In this document: piece by piece, positions 4,502 through 43,903 of the stretch
Position numbering within the stretch: the stretch's first letter is position 1
How the letters are laid out: each line of letters begins with the position of its first letter
Virus record (IMG/VR): IMGVR_UViG_3300048927_000250
Coordinates: 124,001-188,000 of that record
DNA length: 64,000 nt
Strand: one strand, 5' to 3'
Program-made: the position numbers and the translations under genes
The notes under the pieces: generated by a model
Database searches by the model: none
What the model saw: the letters and a program-made list of their open reading frames with translations, nothing else
What the model was told of the DNA's origin: nothing

Positions 4502-5866
4502 TTAAGCTTCGTACTGAGACAGCGCTTTAGAGCCAGCGGCCATTGCAGCACGGAACACAGCGCAGCTGTGAGCAGTGAATGCAGTGTACGGCTCTTTGGT
4601 CCAGGTGACGTAGGAAGAACCGTACTGAACGGCCAGACGGGTGCAAGACTGGTTTTCCTGGTTGACTTTATCTTCGTCAACCTTACGGCTACCAATTTTG
4701 TCCGCTGCTTTGCGCACGTTCTCGCCAGCTTTTTCCATGTCCTTCAGGCCTTTGCCTTCGGTGTAACGCTTCATGGTTTCGCAACCACGGATAACTTCTT
4801 CCGCGATGTCGACAACCTGTGCAGGCGTCAGCACGTCCAGGCTGGCTTCTTCTGGGTCTTTCTGGTCTTTCTTCGTGTCCGCCATGAACACGGTAGAAGA
4901 TTGCAGACGACGCGCGAAGTCACGGCTGTCACCGTCAACGCTACCAGACCAGGTAGAGCAGAAGATGGTTTTACCGCCCAGGATTGGGTCAGATTCAGTC
5001 AGCTTGGTGTCTTTGCTGCTGAAACGGCTGTCAGAAGAAGACTTGTCAGCGTCAGCATCTTTAGACATGTTCTTAAACATGGTGTGGATGTGACCGTTCA
5101 GTTTCTTCAGACCGTCTTTCGCGTCTTCCGGGTCAAAGCTGTTCAGGCTGTCCGCCAGCTTCTCACCGATTTTCGCTACTTCCGGGCAATACTTGGTTGC
5201 CAGGGAGTTCAACGCGCCGTTGATGTCGCGCAGACCAGAAACCAGCTCAGCGCCGTTCTTAACCGGTTTGTCAGCGTAAGAAATCAGACGAGCAACAGAG
5301 CCGCTCACTTCGAATTTCTTCTCTTTAGAGTGCTTACCGGTCATGCCGCCAGCACGCTTTTTCAGGTCTTCGGCAGAACGCTTCAGCGCAGACAGACGAG
5401 AAGTCATTTTACGCCAGAAGGATTTCAGACGCTCGATGATTTTCTTAATCATGCGCTTGATGGTTTCGATGATGTTGCGAACAACTTCACGGAAGCCTTC
5501 AGTTGACACTTTAGAACCGATGTAGCTCTCAACCGCAGGCATCACGGTTTCAGCGCTTTCATCAGAACCGGCAGTCGCCAGGTCAGCAACCTGTTCAGCC
5601 AGAGCAACTTCACCTTCAGTTGCGCCGTCTTCTTTCTGGTTGATACCCTGCTCGATGTAATCGGCAGTTTCTTCGGTTTTGTCAGCCACGTCTTGCAGAC
5701 GGTAGACTTCGTCGAGCTCAGCGTCGGCCGCAGCCAAATCATTCGCTTGCTCTTCGACAATCAGTTCTGCTTCTTCGTTGCTGACTTCCGGCCAGCCCTC
5801 ATTAGAAACCTGAGAACCATAACCACGCAGACCACTTGAAATACGACCCATTTGGGTAATCTCCAT
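4502..5866 (-). CDS. Internal head (ejection) protein, phiKZ gp93-97 / SPN3US gp53-54 paralog family
   Basis: Acidic N-terminal propeptide with (S/A)xE sites (VSNE, AVE, VSTE), then the amphipathic basic helix IIETIKRMIKKIIERLKSFW. Confidence 0.8.
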   Translation of the reverse strand: MEITQMGRISSGLRGYGSQVSNEGWPEVSNEEAELIVEEQANDLAAADAELDEVYRLQDVADKTEETADYIEQGINQKEDGATEGEVALAEQVADLATAGSDESAETVMPAVESYIGSKVSTEGFREVVRNIIETIKRMIKKIIERLKSFWRKMTSRLSALKRSAEDLKKRAGGMTGKHSKEKKFEVSGSVARLISYADKPVKNGAELVSGLRDINGALNSLATKYCPEVAKIGEKLADSLNSFDPEDAKDGLKKLNGHIHTMFKNMSKDADADKSSSDSRFSSKDTKLTESDPILGGKTIFCSTWSGSVDGDSRDFARRLQSSTVFMADTKKDQKDPEEASLDVLTPAQVVDIAEEVIRGCETMKRYTEGKGLKDMEKAGENVRKAADKIGSRKVDEDKVNQENQSCTRLAVQYGSSYVTWTKEPYTAFTAHSCAVFRAAMAAGSKALSQYEA

Positions 5867-37728: not shown

Positions 37729-39261
37729 TTATAAATCGAGCAGGAAGCGTGACGCAGACGTTTCTTCACGACGGGTGTCGCGGCTACGGCTGTTATGGTC
37801 AATCGCGGCGGTAATCAGGTCGTCCATGTCGTTCACGATGTTTTGCAGGACACTACTGTCATTTGCTTTCATCGGAGACAACAGGCCATCACAGAAGACC
37901 GGTGAGTTAAACGGTTCCATTGGACTACCGTCAACGGAGATTTTAATCAGCATGTCAGTAGTAACACGGATGTTCACGGACATGTTGAACGGCAGCTGGT
38001 TGTTACGAGACAACAGCAGACCCAGGTCGGTTTCCAGACGCAGTTCCAGCGCCTGTTCGTAACGGGAGATATCCATGTCACGAATCAGCGGCATTGCGTT
38101 GATAACGCTGCAACGAATTTGACCGTCGAGAGTTTCGTTGGTCATTTCGATGATGGCAGACGAGATGAAGTTGTTCATGACCAGAGCAGGTAAGGTCTTC
38201 GCAATCATCTCAGCGGCCATGGTCACGTTGTTCGCGCCACGCCATTCGTTGGTATCACCACGACGAACACGGTTGGTGTCGGTATGACGAGCAGAGCCGA
38301 AGCCTACCATCATTGCACGCACATCACGCGGCCAGTCAACACAGTCCTGGAATTCAGAGAATGTGATTTCGGCATTGCGTTCGTATTCGGTACGAGACAG
38401 GAAGTTACGGAACAGTTCATTACGGTGCAACTCGGTGCCACGCAACATCGCTGCTGCACGTTCGCTCGGGTTGAGGTCGTCCTGACGTTCCATTTCTTCG
38501 TCCATACGGTTATCGTCAGAATGACGGGTACCGCGTTCGTTCTGGTCAACGGTTTCCGCCGTTACACCGGTACGAATGATATCGGACAGGTAGTTCGCTG
38601 GGTTGTTGTGGATACGACGGGCTGTCTTAAAATCACCGGACAGGTTCGTACGGGAATCGTTGTACGCATCAGCGCCACCGAAACGTCCCACGGTTTGTGC
38701 TTCGGACTTCTGGAAGAAGATGTCCTGTGGACGAATCAGAGTATCATGGTTCTGCACGCCAATGAGGTTACGTTCCGTTGCACGACGGCCACGGATGATG
38801 TACTCACTGGATTCCATACGGCTACCACGACGACGGCCACGACCCGTTTCAATTTCTTCATCACGGATGGTGAACGTGTTGTTGATGTACAGCACGGTAT
38901 CCGGGTCCATCTCACCGGACAACGACAGGTCAGCTTTGTCAGTAAAGCCGGTCAGTACCTGACGGCAGGAAGACCCTGCGTAGTCTTCGGTCAGGACCAC
39001 GATGATGAACGCCAGACGTTCTTCATCCCAACCGTTGGCAATCTGGATAATGTCATTACGACCCACATCGGCACGCAGTTCCAGGATTTCACCTACAGCA
39101 CGGGCGCAGGTGGAGGCATCCAGGTTACGCCCATCATTGGTTTCACGCAGGAAGGTTTCACGTACATGGTCAGAACGACGGTTCGGGACGTAGTGACGAC
39201 CGTACTGGTCTTCTTGACCGGAAGTTACGTAGAAGGTTGCTTCAAGTACACGCGGTTCCAT
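37729..39261 (-). CDS. picA: Phage-nucleus protein import factor PicA/Imp1 (phiKZ gp69-like)
   Basis: 510 aa directly after the gp68-like gene; IANGWDEERLAF, LTGFTD and LIRPQDIF segments; assignment mainly by synteny. Confidence 0.75.
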   Translation of the reverse strand: MEPRVLEATFYVTSGQEDQYGRHYVPNRRSDHVRETFLRETNDGRNLDASTCARAVGEILELRADVGRNDIIQIANGWDEERLAFIIVVLTEDYAGSSCRQVLTGFTDKADLSLSGEMDPDTVLYINNTFTIRDEEIETGRGRRRGSRMESSEYIIRGRRATERNLIGVQNHDTLIRPQDIFFQKSEAQTVGRFGGADAYNDSRTNLSGDFKTARRIHNNPANYLSDIIRTGVTAETVDQNERGTRHSDDNRMDEEMERQDDLNPSERAAAMLRGTELHRNELFRNFLSRTEYERNAEITFSEFQDCVDWPRDVRAMMVGFGSARHTDTNRVRRGDTNEWRGANNVTMAAEMIAKTLPALVMNNFISSAIIEMTNETLDGQIRCSVINAMPLIRDMDISRYEQALELRLETDLGLLLSRNNQLPFNMSVNIRVTTDMLIKISVDGSPMEPFNSPVFCDGLLSPMKANDSSVLQNIVNDMDDLITAAIDHNSRSRDTRREETSASRFLLDL

Positions 39262-39276
39262 TTATAGGCCTCGTTA

Positions 39277-40830
39277 TTAGGAATTGAGTTTAATGTAAAA
39301 GTCTGCTAACACCTGGCGGAAATTCATCGGCACGATGTAGCAACTGTCTTCGACGCGAATCATTTCTGATTCATCGTGGATAGCATCAACAACTTGTGGT
39401 GACCAGCAGTGGTCTGAGCACGCCGCCATGATTGCTTCAATTGCAATCACCGCCGGGTTCTTAGACGTGGTGCGGTTACCTTGTTTGTTCAGCTTCACGG
39501 TACGTCGATAAGGGAGCAACTTCTCCAGCGCCGAGTTCTGGTAATCTTTGGTTTGAACACGGCCGAATTTGTTGTCCCCTAGAGAGGGGTCACGGCGTCG
39601 AGCTTCGCTTGCGCCAATCAATTCTGCGATGGTGGAGAATCCCCACTCATGACAGACGACCTGTGCAATCGACATCAGCTTGACCGTACCATCTCGGTTG
39701 ATGTATCCGTAAGAACGTGGCGTAACGACCGGCTTGGTAATTAACCCTGCCAGACGCATCTGAAACTCTTTCGGGTTGAAAGACTTCCTTGCCATGTTCA
39801 TGTTGATTTGATGACGCACCATCTCCAGGTCAATGTCCGGCTTTATCGCCAGTGCATTCGCCCTGTCGTCTTCTGTATAGAAGTCGAAGATGGCTTCTGT
39901 TACCTCCGAAACGTTAGCACGTAATGTATGGTTCTCCGCTGTGGATGTATTGTCCTCTTCGTTTTTGCCACCACGGTCTATCTCTTTATCGCGGACACGG
40001 AACCCCTGGCGTTCTTCTACGGCTTTGACACGGGTGTCAATGTAGTTGAACAAGTTCGCAATGACGTTCCCCGTCTTCTCCTGGTCATCGTCTTTGTGCG
40101 ACAGACGAATCTGGGTCAAACGGTCAACAACGCATTGACTGAACATCCAGTCTGGCATGTCCAACGTCCCAATCCCTTGCAGTAACGTACTGGTGCCGGA
40201 AATGATTCCTTTGTGCTCCAACGTTGCACTCACGAATTCTTCCAGACGCTGATAAGCATTGCTCTCAGCCAGTACCGTTTGTTCCACTAACCCCAACGCC
40301 CGTTTCTCTGGGAACGTATCGGTTATTGAGTTACGCATCCCGAGGTATTCCCCCCAGATAGGTAACATCACTTTCAGTACCACCGACAATGCTGTCAAGT
40401 CATGGTACTCAGGTTCCAGGTAGGTTTGCTCTACCCGGTGTCCGTCGTTTAGGGTGGTCGCCAACGTATCCGGGAAACGGATGTCGCTGTGCGTTTTCAC
40501 CCAATGGCACATCAGGTCAACCGGATGCAATGCCATTAATTTTTTCACCACGTCCCGTACTTCACGGAAGCGGTATGTTTGGTTAATCGTGTTATTCAAC
40601 GATTCTGCTGCTTCTTTAAACAACGCAAAGACTTCACGGGTTTCATCATCCCCCATCTTCTCACGCCATTCCCAATAATTGTTAATGTCGCGGAAAGTAT
40701 CGTTGATGTCGCCTGCCCGGATTTTCGAATAGTACCCAAGGTTGTAAACAATCTGTTCACTCCCATGCTCGATTATAACCGCTTTGGTTTCACCGAGCAG
40801 CTCAACATCAGAGCGGATTCTCATTGACAC
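39277..40830 (-). CDS. Non-virion RNAP promoter-specificity subunit (phiKZ gp68-like)
   Basis: 517 aa; QTYLEPEYHDL..LSVVLKVMLPIWGEY segment; synteny. Confidence 0.8.
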   Translation of the reverse strand: MSMRIRSDVELLGETKAVIIEHGSEQIVYNLGYYSKIRAGDINDTFRDINNYWEWREKMGDDETREVFALFKEAAESLNNTINQTYRFREVRDVVKKLMALHPVDLMCHWVKTHSDIRFPDTLATTLNDGHRVEQTYLEPEYHDLTALSVVLKVMLPIWGEYLGMRNSITDTFPEKRALGLVEQTVLAESNAYQRLEEFVSATLEHKGIISGTSTLLQGIGTLDMPDWMFSQCVVDRLTQIRLSHKDDDQEKTGNVIANLFNYIDTRVKAVEERQGFRVRDKEIDRGGKNEEDNTSTAENHTLRANVSEVTEAIFDFYTEDDRANALAIKPDIDLEMVRHQINMNMARKSFNPKEFQMRLAGLITKPVVTPRSYGYINRDGTVKLMSIAQVVCHEWGFSTIAELIGASEARRRDPSLGDNKFGRVQTKDYQNSALEKLLPYRRTVKLNKQGNRTTSKNPAVIAIEAIMAACSDHCWSPQVVDAIHDESEMIRVEDSCYIVPMNFRQVLADFYIKLNS

Positions 40831-40896: not shown

Positions 40897-40915
40897 TCTT
40901 TTTAAGATTCGGAAT

Positions 40916-40943
40916 AAACCGTCGCGGCCTTAGCCGCGACGGT
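40916..40943 (-). terminator. Intrinsic terminator
   Basis: ACCGTCGCGGC/GCCGCGACGGT stem followed by TTTATT on the - strand. Confidence 0.8.
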
Positions 40944-40984
40944 CATCGCTGTGCTGTCTTTGCTACATGCTCAGACGAAGGGAA

Positions 40985-41764
40985 TCAGAACGGGATGTCG
41001 GAATCGAAATCGCCGCCAGTGGCGCTACCACCACCAGTTTCGCCGCCCCATCCGCCGCCTGTAGCCTGCTGTTGAGGAGCTTGTTGTTGCTGGTTCTGTT
41101 GAGGTTTGCCCCAACCGCCGCCGCCCTGGCCGCCGTTCCCACCACCGTTCCGGCCGGAGAAGGCATTCTTGCGTTTGTTCTCTGAGGCAATCTTTACCTC
41201 ATCGCGGTCCATGTAACCGGCGTCAATCAGACGGAAGAACTGACGTTCGAAGATTTTCGCTTTCGCACGGGCCACCAACATGGAGGCTTCGTTGTTCGGC
41301 AGGATAGAACCGTCTTTCGCCTGGTAGACAACGTCACGACCCGGCTTGAAGTAGAACTTCACGCTTGGACGACCCTGTTGCGCCAGACCGAAGAACACAC
41401 CATCGTTGTCACGCATGATAACCAGTGACACGTCCAGCTCTTTTTTATCCAGCTTCTTACCGAACTTCCACAGCACCATGTTACCCACTTTGAAGAAATC
41501 ACGGGTACCAGAGGCAATGGCGTGGAGCTCGTCCAGAATAATCTGGAGGTTTTCCGGGTCGGTATAGAAGTCGATGCGACTGTTTTTATCATCGGTACGC
41601 AGGTTAACACCGATGTGCGGGATAGCCACTTTACCGTTTTCTTCGTAACGGAAGTCCCAGAACATGAACGGTTGTTTGTCACCGCCATTCAGGGGGTCCG
41701 CGAACAGACGCATGTTCCAGTCATCCAGTAAACGCGTCGGTCGGTTCAGCTTGTTATCAGCCAT
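40985..41764 (-). CDS. chmC: Nucleus-associated nucleic-acid-binding protein ChmC/Imp6 (phiKZ gp67-like) with an SSB-like tail
   Basis: Immediately upstream of the gp68-like gene; folded N-domain plus a G/Q-rich disordered tail ending DFDSDIPF. Confidence 0.7.
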   Translation of the reverse strand: MADNKLNRPTRLLDDWNMRLFADPLNGGDKQPFMFWDFRYEENGKVAIPHIGVNLRTDDKNSRIDFYTDPENLQIILDELHAIASGTRDFFKVGNMVLWKFGKKLDKKELDVSLVIMRDNDGVFFGLAQQGRPSVKFYFKPGRDVVYQAKDGSILPNNEASMLVARAKAKIFERQFFRLIDAGYMDRDEVKIASENKRKNAFSGRNGGGNGGQGGGGWGKPQQNQQQQAPQQQATGGGWGGETGGGSATGGDFDSDIPF

Positions 41765-41832
41765 TGTTCATTCGCCTTCTTAGGTTTTGATAAGGGGTCC
41801 ACATTAGATAAGACCCGTTCGTAAAAAATGTC

Positions 41833-42693
41833 TCACAGCAGGCGCTGGAGCTGCTTCGCCAGGAATTGGTCCTTCATTCCCTTCAAGTTATACTTGATTT
41901 TTTCCATGGTGGTAACCGGGGTCCACTTGGCCGAGGTGGCCACTTCGAGCAGTTCACGTCGGGCTTTAATTGCCCAACGATTGAAGTGAACCCCACCGTC
42001 ACCAAACACCTGGATGGTAAAGTAGTTGAAAGGAACAATCTTCATCTCTTTACCTTCCGTCAGTTTGGTGGACCACTGACTTTTGGACTTGATGGCACCG
42101 GTATGGGATTCCAGTAAACGCAACTGGTTGAACTTGGTACGGGAGAGCAGGTCAACCGGACAATGGGTAATAATCAGCGACTTGGTCTGTTCACCACGAA
42201 GTTCGCTTCCTTTATCCTGTTCGATTAACGTGTCGGCGTCTTCCATTAACACGTAGTCCAGTGTGCGTTCCATCAGGTCGGCGTACTGCTGTTGCAACGG
42301 GGTTGTTGGGACACGCAGAATCGCCATTGGGTACTTCTTGGCGAGGTCTTTGTACCCCAGGTGGTACACACGTACCCCTTTCAACTTACCGTCCAGGAAG
42401 CCGCGTATCTGTTGCAGTTCTTCCTTCATGGTGTCTGCCATCGCCTTACAGATTTGACGATAGTGGGCGTCCATTTGTGCAGGGGACGGCGGTTTAATCA
42501 TCCGTTCCCGGTCTTCGCGTTCAATGGCGTCGTAGATGTTACGCCACAGCGTACGAATGTTAATCCACAGCGTATCGTACTTCTCATACACCGCAGGTTC
42601 TTTCAATGCTTCGATGGCCATGGACGTGCCGATGGATAACGGAAGTTCACCGGTAGCACGCTTGGCCAATATGTCATACGGGTCTGCTGCCAT
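41833..42693 (-). CDS. Conserved core protein (phiKZ gp66-like), possible degenerate PIN/FEN fold
   Basis: SIGTS, WINIRTLWRN, ITHCPVDLL and LLESHTG segments; synteny. Confidence 0.6.
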   Translation of the reverse strand: MAADPYDILAKRATGELPLSIGTSMAIEALKEPAVYEKYDTLWINIRTLWRNIYDAIEREDRERMIKPPSPAQMDAHYRQICKAMADTMKEELQQIRGFLDGKLKGVRVYHLGYKDLAKKYPMAILRVPTTPLQQQYADLMERTLDYVLMEDADTLIEQDKGSELRGEQTKSLIITHCPVDLLSRTKFNQLRLLESHTGAIKSKSQWSTKLTEGKEMKIVPFNYFTIQVFGDGGVHFNRWAIKARRELLEVATSAKWTPVTTMEKIKYNLKGMKDQFLAKQLQRLL

Positions 42694-42757: not shown

Positions 42758-43903
42758 TCAGTGCATTACGCCGCGGACCAAGTTCACCGCGTGATTGATT
42801 CGTCCAGAAGCTTCTCCGGTACTTTGCAGGTGCTCGGTCAACAACCCGACCAGGTTCTCTTCCGTGAGCGGGGTAACCGCATTGCCCACGTTCAACAACT
42901 TGAAACCGGTGTTAACCTTGTTGTCTTTTTTACCGCCCTTCTCTATCGACGTTAAGATGTAATCCTGGTACAAGTCCTGGAGTTCTTCGAGAATCGCCCG
43001 CATGGGGTCAGTGGCTCCGTGCTCCAGTCGGATAGCACTCCCTTTCGGTAAGTTCTGTCCTTCAATTAACTGGGCAATGTCCGTGACGGTAAAGTCATAG
43101 ACTGCGAGGGTCACGTACTTTTTCGCCAGCTGATTCTCAATAAACCGGAACTCGTGCTCCACTTTATTTCGGTAAGTAATGTCCAGGAACCCTTTCGCTT
43201 CTTCTTCCCCGTGCCCACAGCGGTTCGTTGAACCGATGGAGATGTGTTTCAGAAAACGCGAGAAGGTATGGACATGTCCGGAAAGGATTGCCATCGTTAC
43301 CAGTTCAGACCATTTCTCTGCATCGTGATACGCAGGGGACTGGTGTCCTTGTAACTGGTGTAACCATGCCCCGTGCATAATAGACAGGTCAGCTTTGGCC
43401 AGGCCACGCGAATGCAACAGCTCTTTCGCTTGCTGGTAAGTCTGTTCGGCTTCGGGGTGGTACTCATCAGGAATGTACAACACGTTCAGGTCGTACTCTT
43501 CCATGTAGTCCAGCGTCATGGTGGTGAAGTACTTTACATCGCAGTTCGTTTCCATGGCTTCGTTCAACCAAAGGAAATGTTTTGACTGTCCGCGGTCATG
43601 GGAGCGCGTTCCTTCCAGGATACGCAGTTTGATGTTGTACTTTGCACACACACGCAGGACGTGCGCCATGGCCATCTGCGCCGCGTAGACGTCTTCGTCT
43701 GACATGGTAAGCAAATGGTCAAAGAAGTCGCCAGGGATGAAACAGATGTCGTACACGGCGGTTTCGGGGCTATCCGGGAAATACCGGCGAACCGCAGCTA
43801 ACGTTGACAGGGATGGCGTACGATTGTGTCCGAAATGTGGGTCACTGAACACAAAGATACGCAGCCACTCAGAAATCGTCTTCAACAAAGTCGACGTCGC
43901 CAA
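42758..43903 (-). CDS. sbcD: SbcD/Mre11-like metallophosphoesterase nuclease
   Basis: SDPHFG, GDFFD, GTRSHD, HG and GHVH motifs; the true start may be slightly downstream. Confidence 0.85.
   Translation of the reverse strand: MATSTLLKTISEWLRIFVFSDPHFGHNRTPSLSTLAAVRRYFPDSPETAVYDICFIPGDFFDHLLTMSDEDVYAAQMAMAHVLRVCAKYNIKLRILEGTRSHDRGQSKHFLWLNEAMETNCDVKYFTTMTLDYMEEYDLNVLYIPDEYHPEAEQTYQQAKELLHSRGLAKADLSIMHGAWLHQLQGHQSPAYHDAEKWSELVTMAILSGHVHTFSRFLKHISIGSTNRCGHGEEEAKGFLDITYRNKVEHEFRFIENQLAKKYVTLAVYDFTVTDIAQLIEGQNLPKGSAIRLEHGATDPMRAILEELQDLYQDYILTSIEKGGKKDNKVNTGFKLLNVGNAVTPLTEENLVGLLTEHLQSTGEASGRINHAVNLVRGVMH

Follow-up and report, generated by a model that had tools for sequence, protein, structure and literature searches.

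We identified a jumbo-phage nucleic-acid-binding protein, an ortholog of ChmC/Imp6 with a core predicted to adopt a Whirly fold rather than the usual SSB fold, that ends in a flexible linker and docking tip of the type found in bacterial single-strand-binding protein (SSB). Most of its family shares this tail, which suggests that the protein is the SSB-like hub these phages otherwise seem to lack. The gene lies on the minus strand of a 64,000-nucleotide stretch of IMG/VR record IMGVR_UViG_3300048927_000250 (the window; positions 124,001 to 188,000 of the record). The ChmC/Imp6 family and the SSB tail are each known. What is new is their combination on a non-OB scaffold, the finding that the tail is a trait of the family, the lack of a canonical SSB match in six chimallivirus genomes, and a likeness to SSB that extends through the linker and, in two relatives, to a rare extension after the tip.

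An SSB-type tail in a chimallivirus protein

The open reading frame encodes a 259-residue protein ending ...NGGGNGGQGGGGWGKPQQNQQQQAPQQQATGGGWGGETGGGSATGGDFDSDIPF, with a G/Q/P-rich linker that contains GGGWGKPQQ and the tip DFDSDIPF. The initial annotation had described the end of this protein, at 40985-41165, as a near-perfect mimic of the bacterial SSB tail, and this observation is confirmed. Those coordinates cover residues ~200-259 plus the stop codon, and the last 60 residues read as given there, ending GGDFDSDIPF. The SSB of the host species Erwinia amylovora ends ...NNGWGQPQQPQGGNQ...NNEPPMDFDDDIPF, and E. coli SSB ends ...QGGWGQPQQPQGGNQ...NEPPMDFDDDIPF (...QGGWGQPQQPQ...EPPMDFDDDIPF). 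The phage tip therefore differs at only one position, serine for aspartate at -5, from the tip DFDDDIPF of both.

The likeness goes beyond composition. Smith-Waterman alignment of the 60-residue tail to the E. coli SSB tail scores 96, compared with 57 +/- 8.7 for 2000 composition-preserving shuffles (z 4.5; 2 shuffles reached the observed score), and close relatives of the phage protein score z 6-12 (up to 11.8). In the phage's own 215-kb genome, this is the only one of 2728 stop-to-stop frames of at least 40 residues that ends in an acidic run plus IPF. The stop codon is followed after 41 nt by a 12-bp GC-rich hairpin and a U-tract (dG -25.1 kcal/mol, z -4.1; 0 of 200 shuffles fold as well), so the tip is the true C-terminus. 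A simple consensus terminator scan missed this hairpin, which folding shows.

Features of the chmC/imp6 locus, in window coordinates
Coordinates	Strand	Feature	Support
40985..41764	-	chmC/imp6 ortholog, 259 codons plus stop (PhiEaH1 CF95_gp015, annotated 'hypothetical protein')	ORF and translation; 100% identical to the PhiEaH1 product
41775..41781	-	Shine-Dalgarno-like AAGAAGG, 10 nt before the ATG	Read from the sequence
41216..41743	-	Predicted Whirly-like domain, residues ~8-183 (two 4-stranded sheets plus helices)	AlphaFold2 model and fold matches
41156..41206	-	C-terminal helix, residues 187-203 (ENKRKNAF segment), lower confidence	DSSP on the model; E195/F202 columns nearly invariant in our alignment A1
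41012..41155	-	Disordered linker, residues 204-251, G/N/Q/P-rich, contains GGGWGKPQQ, colinear with the enterobacterial SSB linker	pLDDT below 50; alignment to the E. coli SSB tail; host tail
40988..41011	-	SSB-Ct-type tip DFDSDIPF, residues 252-259	Comparison with E. coli and host SSB; family column consensus
40911..40944	-	Terminator-like hairpin plus U-tract	Folding
37729..39261	-	Imp1/PicA ortholog (510 aa)	hhalign against PhiKZ gp69, 100% probability, E 4e-46
39277..40830	-	Counterpart of PhiKZ gp68 (non-virion RNA polymerase subunit according to 10.1101/2024.03.27.586873)	BLASTP E 2e-33 over the full length; PHROG 3209
41833..42693	-	Counterpart of PhiKZ gp66	BLASTP E 1e-36; PHROG 3229
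42758..43903	-	SbcD-like nuclease subunit	PHROG 100, E 4e-54; RefSeq annotation

Orthology with ChmC/Imp6 and predicted fold

The region is 99.1% identical to Erwinia phage PhiEaH1 (Iapetusvirus). The phage encodes chimallin, PhuZ and multi-subunit RNA polymerases, and is thus a chimallin-encoding phage of the nucleus-forming type. The protein and PhiKZ gp67 both match PHROG 3284 (E 6.6e-62 and 6.1e-80, respectively), and a profile of the protein's relatives aligns to gp67 by hhalign with 99.1% probability (E 2e-18). In addition, the neighboring genes are homologous to those of PhiKZ and occur in the same order (SbcD-like, gp66, gp67, gp68, gp69/Imp1) within the conserved block that includes chimallin. 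PhiKZ gp67, PhiPA3 gp61 and Goslar gp176 are the published ChmC proteins (PMC11077065), and PhiKZ gp67 is also Imp6 (10.1101/2024.03.27.586873). Of the six basic residues mutated in the PhiPA3 Kmut and Rmut proteins (K30, K48, K59, R35, R44 and R63), our alignment A3 matches K30, R35 and K59 (as R63) with basic residues, and the other three are not matched, although basic residues lie nearby.

An AlphaFold2 model built on 15 relatives is confident for residues ~10-180 (pLDDT mostly 84-96 over residues 11-180, with one dip to 73) and disordered from residue 206 onward (pLDDT below 50). The best Foldseek matches are plant WHY2 (probability 0.98), PBF-2, StWhy2, Pur-alpha and trypanosome MRP1/2. 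Structural re-alignment with VIA-align gives Z scores of 10.4-9.2 to WHY2, StWhy2, PBF-2 and MRP1/2 over model residues 9-183. These are all Whirly or PUR-type folds and no OB fold appears among the matches. The similarity is structural only, as the sequence identity is 9-14% and there is no Pfam match to SSB (PF00436) or Whirly (PF08536) at E <= 1. Sequence searches of the PDB with the protein and with the profile from alignment A1 found only low-complexity or tail matches, among them weak hits to SSB chains that cover the tail alone, and no ChmC structure was found among the sequence or fold matches. The possibility that the protein is simply a canonical OB-fold SSB, which had been named in advance as an outcome that would overturn the initial reading, is therefore not borne out by the predicted fold.

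The tail is a trait of the family

The initial annotation treated the tail as a peculiarity of this gene. However, it is a family-wide trait. An exhaustive phmmer search found 89 representatives and a word-based search found 15 closer relatives, to which we added 16 proteins from named phages that were retrieved by tblastn through the Whirly domain only. Of 113 family rows, 77 end [ILMVF]-P-[FWYML], and the column consensus of their last eight residues is DFDDDIPF, identical to the E. coli SSB tip. Proline is invariant at -2 (77 of 77), aspartate is present at -4 in 66 of 77, and isoleucine or leucine is present at -3 in 64 of 77. The terminal residue is F in 42, W in 15, M in 12 and Y in 6 of these rows. 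By contrast, the linkers vary freely in length and sequence, with a G/N/Q/S/P fraction that averages 0.63. The phmmer query included the tail, and the proportion of 68% may be inflated as a result. In the 16 named phages, whose retrieval did not depend on the tail, 8 tips are canonical, 3 are P-x(x)-F, 4 are acidic with an aromatic residue at or near the end, and 1 (from a Vibrio phage) has none. Thus 15 of 16 have acidic ends with a terminal aromatic or hydrophobic residue at or within two residues of the C-terminus. On a tree of the Whirly cores, the canonical tip occurs in both halves and in nearly every clade, and departures are scattered.

The experimentally studied proteins are among the departures, with the degenerate ends ..FDDEIPNF (PhiPA3), ..FDEDMPSF (PhiKZ), ..ELASFDW (201phi2-1) and ..VAFDGLAF (Goslar). 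This may be why the tail was not noticed. The ChmC paper (PMC11077065) describes the end only as an S/D/E-rich 'electronegative cluster' and never mentions SSB, no paper relevant to phages in the literature searched contains both terms, and a 2026 review does not mention SSB either. C-terminal tags would also mask the motif.

Relationship to bacterial ssb genes

The protein sits in a well-supported clade of 14 rows (SH-aLRT 98) in which most members carry GGWG(K/Q/N)..PQQ. Several members carry (E/Q/A)P(P)MDFD..IPF, corresponding to the last 12 residues of enterobacterial SSB. Among 80 gammaproteobacterial SSBs sampled, 74 end DFDDDIPF and 68 contain WGQPQQ. Five of these SSBs carry an extension of ~15 residues after IPF, and two ChmC relatives (P0012 and P0017) carry the same kind of extension, IPF-APIGLQYGKMSVYALA compared with IPF-AYIGLQYPSHAIHSI in a Mixta SSB (z 5.1; 0 of 5000 shuffles). 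These chmC genes come from three independent assemblies and lie in normal chimallivirus gene order. No HNH element that might explain the shared extension was seen in the ~250 bp downstream of the bacterial ssb variants that carry it. Convergence on a rare appendage is unlikely, and we interpret this as evidence that tails have been exchanged between ssb and chmC genes. However, comparison of the tail-coding region with the ssb genes of Erwinia, Pantoea, Salmonella, Serratia, Pectobacterium and E. coli at the DNA level gave only patches of 15-27 nt. There is no sign of recent transfer for this gene, and the choice between exchange and convergence rests on protein-level evidence.

No canonical SSB match in six chimallivirus genomes

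The phage's own genome (99% complete) has no match to Pfam SSB, T4 gp32 or the gp2.5-like family (PF00436, PF08804 or PF10991), and PhiKZ, PhiPA3, Goslar, PCH45 and Moabite have no match to PF00436. Absence of Pfam matches does not exclude another, unrecognized SSB. None of the 241 annotated PhiEaH1 features is an SSB, although the genome encodes UvsX, an RNase H protein of 526 residues (the Rhc type; match in the phage's own genome, E 4.6e-16), SbcC and SbcD, a DnaB-like helicase, another helicase, split DNA polymerases and a DHH (RecJ-family) phosphoesterase. The 72-gene chimallivirus core-genome paper never mentions SSB.

Possible function

ChmC/Imp6 is essential and conserved in Chimalliviridae, and it has been linked to mRNA export, protein import and nucleus maturation, but its mechanism is unclear. 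PhiPA3 ChmC is a homotetramer that binds ssRNA (58 nM) and ssDNA (184 nM) and was found by proximity labelling with the recombinase UvsX. Its C-terminal 48 residues are needed for condensates and shell localization, but not for tetramerization or RNA binding (PMC11077065). PhiKZ Imp6 binds Imp1 directly (10.1101/2024.03.27.586873), and Goslar ChmC co-purifies with Rhc, the DNA polymerase subunits and RNA polymerase. The knock-down phenotype of ChmC (small, immature nuclei) resembles that of Rhc, where DNA replication fails. The ChmC paper does not appear to have examined DNA replication, as the term occurs only once in it, in the abstract.

In bacterial SSB the tip docks many enzymes through its Pro-Phe carboxylate end, the linker supports cooperativity and phase separation, and the acidic end competes with DNA for the binding face. 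Given the shared architecture of a single-stranded nucleic-acid-binding core, a disordered linker and an SSB-Ct tip, we propose that ChmC works as an SSB-like hub for single-stranded RNA and DNA at and inside the phage nucleus. We consider this the most likely role, with moderate confidence, especially given that these phages carry a full replication and recombination set but no recognizable SSB. The identity of the gene, the sequence of the tail and its conservation across the family are established by our analysis, the Whirly fold of the core rests on a confident structure prediction, and the biochemistry is published for homologs. The tetrameric state and nucleic-acid binding of this protein, the docking function of its tip and the identity of any partners are inferred. 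In this model the linker would act as a flexible tether and condensate driver, and the tip would present its Pro-Phe-COO- end to proteins with SSB-Ct-type pockets and can probably also fold back on the basic nucleic-acid-binding face, as in SSB, T4 gp32 and T7 gp2.5. Partners would be mainly phage-encoded, and possibly also host SSB-interacting proteins in clades such as this one where the tail is host-identical. The tail is ancestral to the family and seems to have been exchanged with bacterial ssb genes at least once. Several observations sit less easily with this model. PhiPA3 ChmC binds RNA about three times better than ssDNA, and eCLIP found phage mRNAs. The essential ChmC proteins of PhiKZ, PhiPA3 and Goslar have degenerate tips (P-x-F or none), and an exact SSB-Ct is thus not required for the core function. 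Additionally, the PhiPA3 GFP-ChmC pull-down reported ChmB, RNA polymerases and ribosomal proteins rather than repair enzymes, and an AlphaFold2 screen of PhiKZ Rhc against all PhiKZ proteins did not pick gp67. A complex prediction for the Imp1/PicA ortholog with full-length ChmC, made from our own alignments and without controls, returned a score of 0.00, which is no evidence for or against binding.

The initial annotation proposed that the tail could recruit host genome-maintenance enzymes to the phage nucleus or sequester them, and this interpretation is only partly supported. Its assignment of the gene to the ChmC/Imp6 position and the close match to the enterobacterial SSB linker and tip hold, and the core is predicted to be Whirly-like rather than OB. 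In the host-directed reading, the four host-identical tips per tetramer would compete with host SSB for its partners (ExoI, RecQ, RecJ, PriA, chi, RNase HI, Topo III and Ung), either sequestering them at the shell, shutting down host replication and repair, or ferrying them to the nucleus. The single-residue difference from the host tip, the shared linker motif GWG(K/Q)PQQ and the presence of (E/Q)PPMDFD..IPF in clade relatives, as in the host, are consistent with this. SSB-Ct peptides bind many partners mainly through the last 3-4 residues and the free carboxylate, ChmC is abundant, expressed early and partly cytoplasmic in PhiPA3, and a host topoisomerase is imported in PhiKZ. However, the terminal residue is W, M or Y in 33 of 77 canonical family tips but F in 74 of 80 bacterial SSBs, the tips of Goslar (E. 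coli host) and of PhiKZ and PhiPA3 (Pseudomonas host) are degenerate, and no host SSB partner was reported in the PhiPA3 pull-down. The drift of the terminal residue and the degenerate tips point at least as much to phage-encoded partners, and two phage enzymes belong to families whose E. coli members (RNase HI and RecJ) bind SSB-Ct. We regard the host-directed reading as possible but unlikely on its own, although it is compatible with the hub model.

It is also possible, though again doubtful, that the tail is only a condensate and localization module, in which the linker drives phase separation, the acidic end tempers non-specific RNA binding or docks on shell or import factors (Imp1/PicA, ChmB), and the resemblance to SSB-Ct has no partner-docking meaning. 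The loss of condensates and shell localization in the published deltaC mutant, which keeps the tetramer and RNA binding, the direct binding of Imp6 to Imp1, and the function of degenerate tips in the model phages are in line with this. However, a generic acidic cluster would not keep proline at -2 in 77 of 77 rows, an aliphatic residue at -3 in 72 of 77 (phenylalanine in the other 5) and an aromatic residue or methionine at the very end in 75 of 77. FLAG-tagged gp67 still bound Imp1, though the position of the tag is ambiguous in the text. A canonical OB-fold SSB misplaced in the ChmC position is very unlikely, since only the tail resembles SSB and the confident model of residues 10-180 matches Whirly, PUR and MRP proteins at Z 7-10. 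Chance resemblance is equally unlikely. G/Q/N-rich tails align easily and similarity to ssb genes at the DNA level is limited to short patches, but the tail alignment exceeds shuffled expectation, the tip is conserved position by position across the family, and it is unique in its genome.

A more far-reaching and tentative possibility is that ChmC is the missing replication and recombination SSB of nucleus-forming phages, a Whirly-fold SSB that carries, and has repeatedly exchanged with bacterial ssb genes, the SSB linker and tip. Through that tip it would organize the phage replisome and recombination enzymes (Rhc-DNA polymerase, DnaB-like helicase, UvsX and the RecJ-family DHH enzyme) and any imported host SSB partners inside the phage nucleus, and mRNA binding and export would be a second job of the same hub. 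Recognition of the C-terminus as an SSB-type tail provides an 8-residue motif, with decades of SSB biochemistry behind it, that can be used to find the partners of ChmC. It also bears on the question of which protein coats single-stranded DNA in a phage nucleus that excludes most host proteins and whose phages encode no recognizable SSB, and it shows that the SSB tail can be transplanted in nature onto a non-OB scaffold.

Comparison with known systems

The closest relatives are the ChmC/Imp6 proteins of PhiPA3 (gp61), PhiKZ (gp67) and Goslar (gp176), which share the PHROG, the gene block, the predicted Whirly core and a disordered G/N-rich C-terminal region with an acidic end. However, here and in most of the family the end is a canonical SSB-Ct (..D-I-P-F), and in this clade the linker also copies the enterobacterial SSB linker. 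Bacterial SSB (PF00436) of E. coli and Erwinia shares the disordered G/Q/P linker with GWGQPQQ and the tip, DFDDDIPF in SSB; condensate formation through the linker is a property of E. coli SSB, and a tetrameric state for the phage protein is by analogy with PhiPA3 ChmC. The nucleic-acid-binding core is predicted to be a Whirly fold rather than an OB barrel, and in PhiPA3 the homolog prefers ssRNA over ssDNA, so the protein is not a member of the SSB family. The plant organellar Whirly proteins (WHY1-3, StWhy2, PBF-2/p24) and trypanosome MRP1/MRP2 are the best structural matches and are tetrameric single-stranded nucleic-acid binders that act in organelle genome maintenance or RNA editing. They have no detectable sequence similarity to the protein described here, which is of phage origin and carries an SSB-type tail, and literature searches for an acidic or aromatic autoregulatory C-terminus in plant Whirly proteins returned nothing. 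Finally, phage SSBs such as T7 gp2.5, whose acidic C-terminal tail ends in an aromatic residue, and T4 gp32, with its acidic tail, have tails that both compete with ssDNA for the binding face and recruit the phage polymerase and helicase, and these provide the working analogy for a phage-internal hub. Those proteins have OB-type cores and their own tail sequences, whereas this protein has a predicted Whirly core and the tail sequence of the host.

We identified a ~15-residue extension after the normally terminal IPF in five of 80 gammaproteobacterial SSBs (bacterial ssb loci L053, L075, L079, L092 and L100), for example IPF-LGHGYGICRKAIYAIS and IPF-AYIGLQYPSHAIHSI. Such an extension would bury the free carboxylate of the tip. 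This SSB subclass is not one known to us, and its members may be mobile-element copies. Two phage ChmC proteins, the relatives P0012 and P0017, have the same kind of extension. In the two contigs that encode them (L104 and L102, respectively), an ORF with an HNH-like CxxC...HLNKCKxC motif starts right at the chmC stop (frame +2), and an extra ~210-aa gene sits between chmC and the gp68-like gene. This insertion is lacking in the window and in loci L105 and L106.

Coordinates of the ChmC relatives and associated ORFs
Feature	Sequence	Position	Strand
ChmC relative P0012	L104	1234-2061	
ChmC relative P0017	L102	4001-4807	
Region of the ORF with the HNH-like motif and the extra ~210-aa gene	L102	~4805-5465	
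Region of the ORF with the HNH-like motif and the extra ~210-aa gene	L104	~2060-2640	
ChmC homolog of Klebsiella phage vB_kp_MJ359	PQ182779.1	60778-61425	
ORF overlapping the tail-coding region	window	40967..41185	+
ORF overlapping the tail-coding region	window	40963..41190	-

The ORFs of 72-75 aa that overlap the tail-coding region of the window in other frames are shadows of the GC-rich, repetitive Gly/Gln codons and are not genes. The ChmC homolog of Klebsiella phage vB_kp_MJ359 is annotated as 'attachment protein', which looks like a mis-annotation, while elsewhere it is 'hypothetical protein'.

The record of PhiEaH1, which is near-identical to the genome of the window, encodes a DHH (RecJ-family) phosphoesterase, UvsX, a 526-aa RNase H protein (Rhc type), SbcC and a DnaB-like helicase (gp089, gp174, gp177, gp187 and gp217). 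However, no SSB, UvsY or gp32 equivalent is annotated in this record.

The ChmC homolog of Vibrio phage vB_VmeM-Yong XC31 is short (227 aa), with almost no G/N-rich linker and no acidic tip (it ends ..SGSSTGW), and it sits on a long branch. The ChmC proteins of the model phages PhiPA3 (gp61), PhiKZ (gp67), 201phi2-1 (gp123) and Goslar (gp176) also have atypical tips, with either one residue inserted between Pro and Phe or no Pro-Phe at all. The PhiKZ-like clade forms one supported group of departures on the tree.
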